A DNA stretch of 64,000 bases, from the NCBI GenBank assembly GCA_964199315.1, contig OZ116712.1, forward strand, positions 1,736,001-1,800,000, written 5' to 3'. Source of the stretch: Orbicella franksi (lineage: Eukaryota). Both the position numbers and the translations under genes were made by a program. Position 1 is the first letter of the stretch, and every line of letters starts with the position of its first letter. The notes below the pieces were generated by a model. It did no database searches and was not told the DNA's origin. It was given only the letters and a program-made list of their open reading frames with translations. Positions 19,024 to 20,632 of the stretch are shown here, piece by piece.

Positions 19024-19297
19024 TTATCTGTAATTCTGTTGGCGGTGACCAAACCTCGTTCTGGTGTTGTTCATCTTGAACGCCGGCATATTTCCTTCAA
19101 TCAATCGGTGGTCTGTTCCACCAATCACAACCCTGCATTCAGGACACGTGCTTCGCTGCATGGCTTGTCCACACCTGCCAATCGTGTAAACATGTCCCTG
19201 GGGGCATTTGTACCAACGACCTTGAGACAGGTTCATCGCGGACACGATCTCTTTCTTTTCTTCGGGCGTTATTGGCGAGAGGAAGCGGTAGGCTTGC
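19024..19297 (-). other. Orphan ZNFX1-type terminal exon encoding an RZ zinc finger (also readable as unspliced 141-aa ORF 19449-19024)
   Basis: TTTTTCTTTGCAG acceptor in the same phase-2 position as the ZNFX1 last exon; encodes TPEEKKEIVSAMNLSQGRWYKCPQGHVYTIGRCGQAMQRSTCPECRVVIGGTDHRL. Confidence 0.85.
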
Positions 19298-20632
19298 CTG
19301 CAAAGAAAAACAGGAATAATTGTCATCTCAAGGTGTCTTGAAAGATCTGCAACTGAGGTAGTTTGCTTTTGCAAACATGCGATAAGCATATCTTTTAGCA
19401 GACAGGGCGTGACGGCCAGGCGTGAGAGATTCTGGAAGATCGATTCCATATTTAAGATTTGACTGGATGTCTTTTATCCAGTATTAGATCATAAGAAATC
19501 ATGAGATTCAAGCTGTAGAAAATTTACTCTGATGATGTGCATATTAAGGGTGAGGTCTGGTTTTTAATTTACAGTGCATGAAATTCAAATGAAAGATAGT
19601 TTTGTCATGGACTGAGTTGCAACCTTTATTCCAACGTTTATTCCAATCAACTGAAACCTGAAATGAATGGCTTATAATACATGTACATGCAGTACAGAAA
19701 CTAATCATTATTATAAGTAATCTATTAAAAGTATGTTAATTAATGTTAATTTCTTTGCTTTTAACAGGAAAATAGTGCACAAGAAGGACATCAGCAACAA
19801 GAAAAGGAAAGCGACAAAAATAATTAATTGAAATGTACATACTGTCAAAATGCTGCGATAGTTTCCAGTGGAATGGTCTAACTGGAGAGCAAATGTTTTT
19901 TTGCAATGGATCAGAAACTTCCAATGTTACTAATAATACAATTGCTTTTTTATTTACTGTATAATGTGGTATGGATTAAACAAGACTTAAAAAAAGACAA
20001 AAAAATTACTGTTACTCTGAATAATTTTCCTTACATCAACTTAATGCACCGAGCAATAACTGCTGCATATATCGTAATTATACATGTAGCACAATTTAAG
20101 GTGGCTCTGACTGAAGCCTTATTTGTTGCCTTTGTTAAATTAGCCAAAATGTCAACTTACATTGTGACCTGTAACCAAATTAATTCCAAGTTTAGAATTT
20201 TTATTCTTAGAAATAAATTGAATGTTGCAATGTGTGCTGTTGGTCATCATCACAACAGTTGTCATCAAGTTTTGCTTTAGAAAATATTTCAGAGCCACCT
20301 TAAATTTTCCTGCGTGGAATGTTTGTTATTTGGCAAGACGTTATGTTCTCGTATATATGTATACTGTATGTATTTCAAATGTGAATATTACTAATATGTT
20401 GGCTTTCTGTATACTTTTACTTGTTGCACTTAGGCTAAAATTTTGTGAATTTACCAATTTACAAACCCACACAGACCTACCAGTAATGCCAAATGCCTGC
20501 CTTTGAATTTTGCATCGCAATTAAATTATTTTTCATAAGAGGCTTCATTGACTTTGTTTAAAGGAGAGAAAACTGATTGTCAACAATAATAATAAAAGGA
20601 GAGAATGTTGCAGTTAAACCTCCTGTTTAGAG

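Follow-up and report, generated by a model that had tools for sequence, protein, structure and literature searches.

The RZ finger is a domain common to ZNFX1 and RNF213 (Otten et al. 2021, as cited in PMC11549300). In RNF213, three cysteines and one histidine of the finger bind zinc, and C4516 and H4537 have been proposed to act as nucleophile and general base, respectively (PMC11549300). For human ZNFX1, auto-ubiquitylation by the RZ fragment on its own has been observed in vitro; RZ and Miz may also work together in trans in polymers of the protein, and an action between protomers has been proposed (bioRxiv 10.1101/2025.10.14.682297).

Here we describe two RZ fingers, w1 and w2, that lie alone on the minus strand within a tandem array of plus-strand ZNFX1-like genes of a coral. 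The window, that is, the whole stretch of DNA analysed, spans 64 kb and contains no N runs. Our analyses indicate that w1 and w2 are most likely relics, namely the recently duplicated and truncated 3' end of a ZNFX1 paralogue, copied twice together with its neighbour. We call B-type the ZNFX1 paralogue with a divergent RZ tail, to which this 3' end belongs, and A-type the form with the canonical tail.

Two RZ terminal exons on the minus strand of a ZNFX1 array

The plus strand of the window carries three ZNFX1-like genes in tandem (A1, A2 and A3), the closest named relatives of the family being “NFX1-type zinc finger-containing protein 1-like” proteins of scleractinian corals. The plus-strand units are mosaics, with stretches at 97% identity and others at 75–86%. 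The orphan copies occupy the opposite strand, and the features used below are the following.

4886-14113, plus strand: gene A1, ZNFX1-like, with an A-type tail
13790-14113, plus strand: RZ terminal exon of A1, stop codon at 14113, tail-to-tail with w1 and 4.9 kb apart from it
17558-19023, minus strand: w1 copy of the parent 3'UTR, with AATAAA at 17571-17566
19024-19297, minus strand: w1 coding sequence within the orphan B-type RZ terminal exon (1 nt, 90 codons and a stop at 19024-19026)
19298-19452, minus strand: w1 retained 3' end of the parent's last intron, with polypyrimidine tract and acceptor AG at 19299-19298
19024-19449, minus strand: w1 ORF of 141 aa, carrying the full RZ finger, with its ATG (19449-19447) inside the retained intron part
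24906-27401: reverse transcriptase ORF, the sole domain found near the orphan upstream region
31467-39170, plus strand: gene A2, ZNFX1-like
38868-39170, plus strand: RZ terminal exon of A2, with w2 downstream on the minus strand
47745-49176, minus strand: w2 copy of the parent 3'UTR, with AATAAA at 47758-47753 and an 18-nt deletion relative to w1
49177-49465, minus strand: w2 coding sequence within the orphan RZ exon (first exon base 49465, acceptor AG at 49467-49466)
49466-49620, minus strand: w2 counterpart of the retained intron end, sharing the w1 breakpoint (position 1118 of contig L009 aligns to 49620)
49177-49617, minus strand: w2 ORF of 146 aa, carrying the full RZ finger
57240 to the window end, plus strand: gene A3, ZNFX1-like

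The anatomy given in the preliminary description holds in its main lines. Two minus-strand ORFs of 141 and 146 aa are indeed open from an ATG, the second being five codons longer owing to a 1-nt deletion in its last codon. In both copies the first exon base (19297 and 49465) is in phase 2 and stands behind a polypyrimidine tract and an AG, at the very position of the acceptor used in the parent's spliced cDNA, and the poly(A)-signal motif is exact. The RZ cysteines and histidines said to be kept are all there (C-x3-H-x6-C-x8-C-x2-C-x8-H), and their spacing, read from the translations of both copies, is that of C4505, H4509, C4516, C4525, C4528 and H4537 of RNF213.

At the domain level, the predicted product of w1 and w2 is a bona fide RZ finger. 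The w1 ORF matches the Pfam family PF20173 (ZnF_RZ-type) with an E-value of 1.5e-22 and 79.4 bits, for a gathering cut-off of 27, and RNF213 chains in the PDB at an E-value of ~1e-11. An AlphaFold2 (AF2) model of the ORF, inspected for the short N-terminal helix and the ensuing beta-sandwich of RZ fingers, has a helix (residues 62–73) and four strands, with core pLDDT of 74–89 and low confidence over the N-terminal 60 residues; a Foldseek search of the PDB with this model returned nothing significant (best E-value 0.76). An exact look-up of the 141-aa product retrieved no record. We also considered a kinship between the tail of the window copies (NN.RT..GH) and that of RNF213. The resemblance looks coincidental, as other B-type tails do not have it and can be read as diverged A-type tails.

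The finger stands alone on its strand, as had been claimed: a tblastn search with all pieces of the plus-strand ZNFX1 ORFs matched the RZ exon only. No ZNFX1 piece was found upstream on the minus strand over 44.5 kb (w1) or 14.4 kb (w2), and the parent's penultimate exon was not found on the minus strand of the window. A complete ZNFX1-like gene was accordingly rejected, with neither a ZNFX1 domain, nor AAA_11/AAA_12 helicase, nor NFX1-type fingers found upstream on the same strand. A hidden minus-strand gene upstream was likewise rejected: no ZNFX1 piece was found there, no Pfam domain in the ORFs between 19900 and 24130 and no Rfam family in 14000-26000.

The B-type parent gene and its truncated copies

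The two copies had been described as a diverged ZNFX1 last exon. The ZNFX1 last-exon identity stands, but a source in the neighbouring genes does not: the w1 and w2 exons share only 52–57% protein identity with the adjacent plus-strand RZ exons (13790-14113 and 38868-39170), whereas exon and 3'UTR are 96–98% identical in nucleotides to the last exon and 3'UTR of the B-type paralogue. The closest relatives in a full-library HMMER search were short predicted ORFs sharing the unusual tail ...RTRFG..QNY. In L001, L005–L007, L013 and L014, long contigs of related assemblies, such B-type RZ ORFs lie downstream of, and on the same strand as, ZNFX1/AAA_11/AAA_12 ORFs, and are therefore ordinary last exons of full ZNFX1-like genes; the short “RZ-only” proteins of the databases are ORF calls on such exons. 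B-type tails form a clade (support 100/100) apart from the canonical A-type, with w1 and w2 nested within it.

A 41-mer search of JGI contigs retrieved L016, a 7.2-kb spliced cDNA with ZNFX1, AAA_11 and AAA_12 followed by the RZ domain. Its positions 1–1748 align to window positions 17558-19300 at 96.1% identity, the match stops at the acceptor, and its AATAAA lies 8 nt from the contig end. A second contig, L012, has the same splice junction. Two genomic contigs from metagenomes, L017 and L018, hold an intact B-type gene with both its last intron (652 nt) and its last exon; they are 98.7–99.4% identical to L016 over the two large exons, 96.6% over the antepenultimate and 100% over the penultimate exon. 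Contigs L008 (a 99.3% match to w2), L017 and L018 have near-consecutive ENA accession numbers and, from these numbers and the identities of 99–100%, the parent contigs (L016–L018) appear to come from the same species as the window. Judged from these contigs, an intact and expressed B-type parent is present outside the window. Other genomic contigs, L009–L011, which are 89% identical to the window, contain the penultimate ZNFX1 exon, an intron of 810 nt and the RZ exon; L009, where the gene of a related species is intact, served as outgroup.

Comparison with L009 locates the truncation. Homology of its positions 1118–1266 to the window begins at 19452 (w1) and 49620 (w2), three bases before the ATG, and extends past the exon into 3' flanking sequence, which places the breakpoint ~150 nt upstream of the acceptor, near 19452. 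Past this point, positions 19453-20400 gave a best local score of 24 against the L009 intron and penultimate exon, with shuffled sequences scoring up to 30. The homology between w1 and w2, by contrast, crosses the breakpoint and reaches 22800/52984, 3.3 kb further. As the two copies share the breakpoint, the truncation would have preceded the duplication of the unit, and the ~25 positions of the 3'UTR at which w1 and w2 share a state not found in the intact gene fit this order of events, a single truncation followed by unit duplication. An intron segment of 45–70 nt, which holds the ATG of the 141-aa ORF, is present in the orphans and in L009 but lost from the intact gene (L017/L018); the orphans must therefore be separate loci. 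Since ~150 nt of intron are retained and no A-run follows position 17558 in the window, the copy arose from DNA rather than through retroposition; the retained intron and the lack of an A-tail after the cleavage site rule out a processed retrocopy.

We propose that the copied part comprised the last ~150 nt of the last intron, the RZ terminal exon and a 3'UTR stretch of no less than 1.47 kb, with the poly(A) signal in it. This fragment, sitting tail-to-tail with a plus-strand A-type ZNFX1-like gene, would have been copied together with that gene when a unit of 26–30 kb duplicated to give w1 and w2. In contig L013, a full B-type gene converges tail-to-tail with a full A-type gene at a distance of 6 kb, a layout that the window mirrors with the B-type gene reduced to its tail; either an ancestral convergent pair lost most of its B-type member or a B-type tail was copied beside an A-type gene. 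Between its two genes, L013 also contains a stray 413-nt fragment of a ZNFX1 helicase exon, hence gene debris is common in such arrays. A search for colinear flank synteny with L005 and L013 returned only scattered repeat-like matches.

To count changes by lineage (273 nt of coding sequence, ~1.45 kb of UTR), we took L016 as the intact reference and L009 as the outgroup, because L012, L017 and L018 each mix sequence from the three copies. The w1 coding sequence differs from the intact one at five positions (L012 is identical to L016 there). Four of these changes are specific to w1, two synonymous (19240 and 19189) and two replacing Gly by Arg beside the putative catalytic Cys (19176) and Glu by Lys (19077), against ~20 changes in its UTR. 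The w2 lineage has 4–6 coding changes plus the deletion in the last codon, and ~10 UTR changes; among its specific changes are an Asp replaced by Glu next to the putative general-base His and an Arg replaced by Gly. The intact gene accumulated a single coding change, synonymous, and in the UTR at most the ~25 differences shared by w1 and w2, as L009 ends early. Across both orphan lineages the coding part thus gathered about four synonymous and four non-synonymous changes and one frameshift, and these counts imply that the orphan coding sequence changes at least as fast as its UTR.

The dN/dS ratio proposed as a check of the relic reading gave a less clear-cut answer. Between w1 and w2, the Nei-Gojobori method counts five synonymous and five non-synonymous differences (dN 0.024, dS 0.093), a ratio of 0.26 which, with only ten differences, is not clearly distinct from 1 (binomial P = 0.04 under equal rates, 0.12 with a transition bias). 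The dN of 0.024 is close to the divergence of the flanking non-coding sequence (2–4%), and several of the changes are CpG transitions. Weak purifying selection may act on the coding part. In neutral simulations with 4–5 substitutions, the ORF and the six key residues survived with P ~0.60–0.66 per copy, so that an intact ORF is uninformative on function. Taken together, the data fit, rather than prove, a relaxed coding constraint.

What counts against a relic is the survival, in w1 as in w2, of an open ORF, the acceptor, the poly(A) signal and the complete set of six Cys/His.

A relic had at first been held to be as possible as a functional module. The present results favour it, as everything beyond ~150 nt of the last intron has been lost and the coding part evolves no more slowly than the 3'UTR. 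Since their truncation, w1 and w2 would have evolved without detectable coding constraint, and the intact ORF, acceptor and Cys/His would reflect youth (~1–2% change per copy) instead of maintenance. The two copies may still give rise to small amounts of unspliced RNA.

Other readings of the orphan copies

Among the other readings, the fragments might be gene conversion partners of the intact B-type gene and diversify its RZ tail, which we consider unlikely. Several contigs have the composition that conversion would produce: L018 joins intact-gene 5' sequence to a w1-like 3' part, L017 carries a w2-like tract inside the exon, and L012, which we had tried as a clean allele and rejected on the variant table as a mosaic of the three copies, turns w1-like in its UTR. 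Moreover, w1 agrees with the intact gene at two states against w2 and the outgroup, and the mosaicism of the plus-strand units described above points in the same direction. However, more than 140 identical bases between copies allow chimeras to form in de Bruijn graphs, and one of the two shared states is a CpG transition, which can recur.

Somewhat less probable is that a new minus-strand transcript, spliced or unspliced, uses the acceptor and poly(A) signal, intact in both copies, to yield a chimeric protein or a non-coding or antisense RNA. The evidence for transcription is contig L015 (1.9 kb, JGI sample 3300008039), which covers 19887-18013 without gaps at 99.9% identity and, being colinear with the genome, is unspliced; its own ORF occurs in one JGI contig only. 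The spliced contig L012 comes from the neighbouring JGI sample 3300008040, which suggests that both samples are probably metatranscriptomes. L015 may accordingly be RNA and the locus a transcribed one, although this single contig, which does not give its strand, could be genomic carry-over or read-through. As for splicing, a 31-nt candidate exon (22091-22061) is bounded by AG and GT but has neither homology to the parent gene nor transcript support. The spliced contigs found belong to the intact gene only, and a 41-mer scan of JGI contigs, non-exhaustive since it missed L012, found none with a new exon joined to the orphan acceptor. Neither Pfam domains nor conserved ORFs were found in 19450-24900, nor any Rfam family in 14000-26000. 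Furthermore, a minus-strand RNA ending at the poly(A) signal at 17571-17566 would stop 3.4 kb short of the plus-strand stop at 14113, so an overlap with that coding sequence is not expected.

The stand-alone RZ microprotein suggested in the preliminary description, translated from the ATG at 19449 or 49617 and acting as a ligase, a decoy or a ZNFX1 regulator, fares worse, and we regard it as very unlikely. It would agree with an ORF that is open in w1 and w2 alike and whose ATG has A at -3 and G at +4, with an RZ domain modelled complete down to its N-terminal helix, with L015 as a possible transcript and with the in vitro activity of the isolated human finger. Nevertheless, the first 50 codons of both ORFs are a former intron of the parent. 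Identity to L009 is 82.9% over this 150-nt stretch and 82.7% over the 3'UTR, against 94.9% over the exon, a difference that reflects past constraint on the exon only. Relative to L009, indels of 2 nt and 1 nt shift the frame for ~18 codons between ATG and acceptor; in the other B-type relatives the sequence ahead of the conserved “CR” (acceptor tgcag|g) is unrelated, and the segment that supplies the ATG is deleted from the intron of the intact gene (L017/L018). A conserved small-ORF protein was rejected on these grounds, namely the frameshifting indels, the UTR-like identity and the ATG segment missing from the intact intron, which leave no coding conservation over the whole ORF. In addition, if L015 is minus-sense RNA, ten ATGs precede the 141-aa ORF in the leader that it covers. 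The poorly predicted N-terminal 60 residues, the coding rate equal to that of the UTR, the non-synonymous changes beside the catalytic Cys and His, and the fact that short “RZ-only” database proteins are last-exon ORF calls of full genes all speak against such a protein.

Finally, a mis-joined assembly in which the exon belongs to the intact B-type gene is extremely improbable: the mosaic short-read contigs L012, L017 and L018 do show that assemblers struggle here, but L015 (99.9%) and L008 (99.3%) cross the junction independently, the junction and the 3.3 kb beyond it are common to both window copies, and the orphans differ from the intact gene by the retained intron segment and the ~25 shared UTR positions.

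Significance and comparison with known systems

If w1 and w2 are relics, as we favour, they matter mostly for annotation. Gene callers will report them as an “RZ-type domain protein” of 141–146 aa, databases already contain such ORF calls, and short-read assemblers make chimeras of the orphan and the intact gene. The locus is also a record of birth-and-death turnover in a coral ZNFX1 array, where A/B pairs converge, the B-type RZ tail has diverged and partial duplicates occur. There is a slim chance that the orphan tails are transcribed from near the breakpoint, end at their own poly(A) signal and provide a free RZ module. Such a module might act in trans, either receiving ubiquitin from E2 bound to the Miz domain in neighbouring ZNFX1 polymers or competing for it, and the array would thereby gain a detachable catalytic or decoy subunit. 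The activity of the isolated human fragment makes a free-RZ role biochemically conceivable, but nothing in the present data supports such a role; only if it were true would the locus bear on the action of RZ fingers outside their parent enzymes.

Compared with the RZ fingers of ZNFX1 and RNF213, the orphans have the same domain, with four Cys, two His and a helix predicted ahead of them, encoded in the terminal exon of a gene, but they stand apart from helicase, NFX1 fingers and Miz-like domain. Their tail is the divergent B-type (...RTRFG..QNY), whereas the canonical A-type ends in ...HAAWSEQANL.NY. Like a processed retrocopy, they cover an mRNA 3' end up to the poly(A) signal, but they retain intron sequence and have no A-tail. 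They resemble unprocessed pseudogene fragments of tandem arrays, from which they differ by being stop-free, by keeping splice and poly(A) signals and by being possibly transcribed, and with which they share the combination of parent intron, exon and UTR, a breakpoint, an intact parent elsewhere, co-duplication with a neighbour and a coding rate apparently equal to the non-coding rate.

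Mosaic structure of the tandem units

The two tandem units that carry the plus-strand ZNFX1-like genes A1 and A2 (unit 1, 1-22800; unit 2, 26582-52984) form a mosaic, with an identity of 96-97% along most of their length and just 75-86% in the ZNFX1 gene's 3' portion (10299-14157 in unit 1 versus 37289-39217 in unit 2). This pattern suggests either exchange with other paralogues or a patchwork duplication. Unit 3, from 57240 onward, is an older copy, with an identity of 65-79%. The large helicase exon of A1 has a 22-nt deletion relative to A2 (7100-7340 versus 33681-33945), which disrupts its reading frame, leaving an ORF of 818 aa from 7272 compared with one of 874 aa from 33701 in A2. 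Gene A1 may be a pseudogene in its own right.

Retroelement, insertion and minus-strand ORFs

Several additional features lie between or within the units:

24906-27401, minus strand: reverse-transcriptase ORF of 831 aa (RVT_1 domain, E=7.8e-8), between units 1 and 2
42495-47207: 4.7-kb insertion, in unit 2 only; its flanking blocks adjoin each other at 17020-17022 in unit 1
16995-17462, minus strand: long ORF of 155 aa, low-complexity, Pro/Phe-rich
47002-47649, minus strand: long ORF of 215 aa, low-complexity, Pro/Phe-rich

The final 820 nt of the reverse-transcriptase ORF recur at the very start of the window (1-820), and a second copy of the retroelement therefore probably lies upstream of unit 1. 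Within the 4.7-kb insertion, the only ORF of at least 130 aa is the part of 47002-47649 that extends into it. The two low-complexity ORFs traverse a 44-nt tandem repeat (17332-17431) and are probably not genes.

The intact B-type gene and its contigs

The B-type ZNFX1 paralogue, parent of the orphan RZ-finger exon copies w1 (19024-19449) and w2 (49177-49617), is intact outside the window. The GT donor following its antepenultimate exon has its G in the genomic contigs (L017 9320-9400) and a T in the 7.2-kb spliced cDNA L016 (sense, ~5130-5200), which splices instead from a cryptic donor ~63 nt downstream and so reaches a stop ahead of the last two exons; the change is either a splice-site variant or a sequencing error. 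In the last exon and 3'UTR, the contigs of this gene are mosaic: L018 switches to w1-like sequence, L017 carries a w2-like tract, 1-nt deletion included, and the splice-junction contig L012 is w1-like from within the UTR. Either these mosaics are assembly chimeras, formed across >140 identical bases, or the orphans and the parent have undergone real gene conversion. Another contig, L008, tracks w2 at 99.3% and leaves it at window position 49733 for unrelated repetitive sequence (L008 1-173); it may stem from a third copy in a different context, carry a polymorphic insertion, or be chimeric.

A related locus and a recurrent element

An element of ~110-130 nt is repeated around B-type genes with 74-78% identity, in varying positions and orientations, including the related-assembly contigs L005 and L013:

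window 17713-17846, within the copied 3'UTR
L005 9217-9326
L013 13654-13785

This element probably represents a small mobile repeat. In a related genome, L013 (minus strand, 13908-14320 and 16351-17665) holds a full convergent pair, with a B-type gene on the plus and an A-type gene on the minus strand, and a stray 413-nt fragment of a ZNFX1 helicase exon lies between the two genes.
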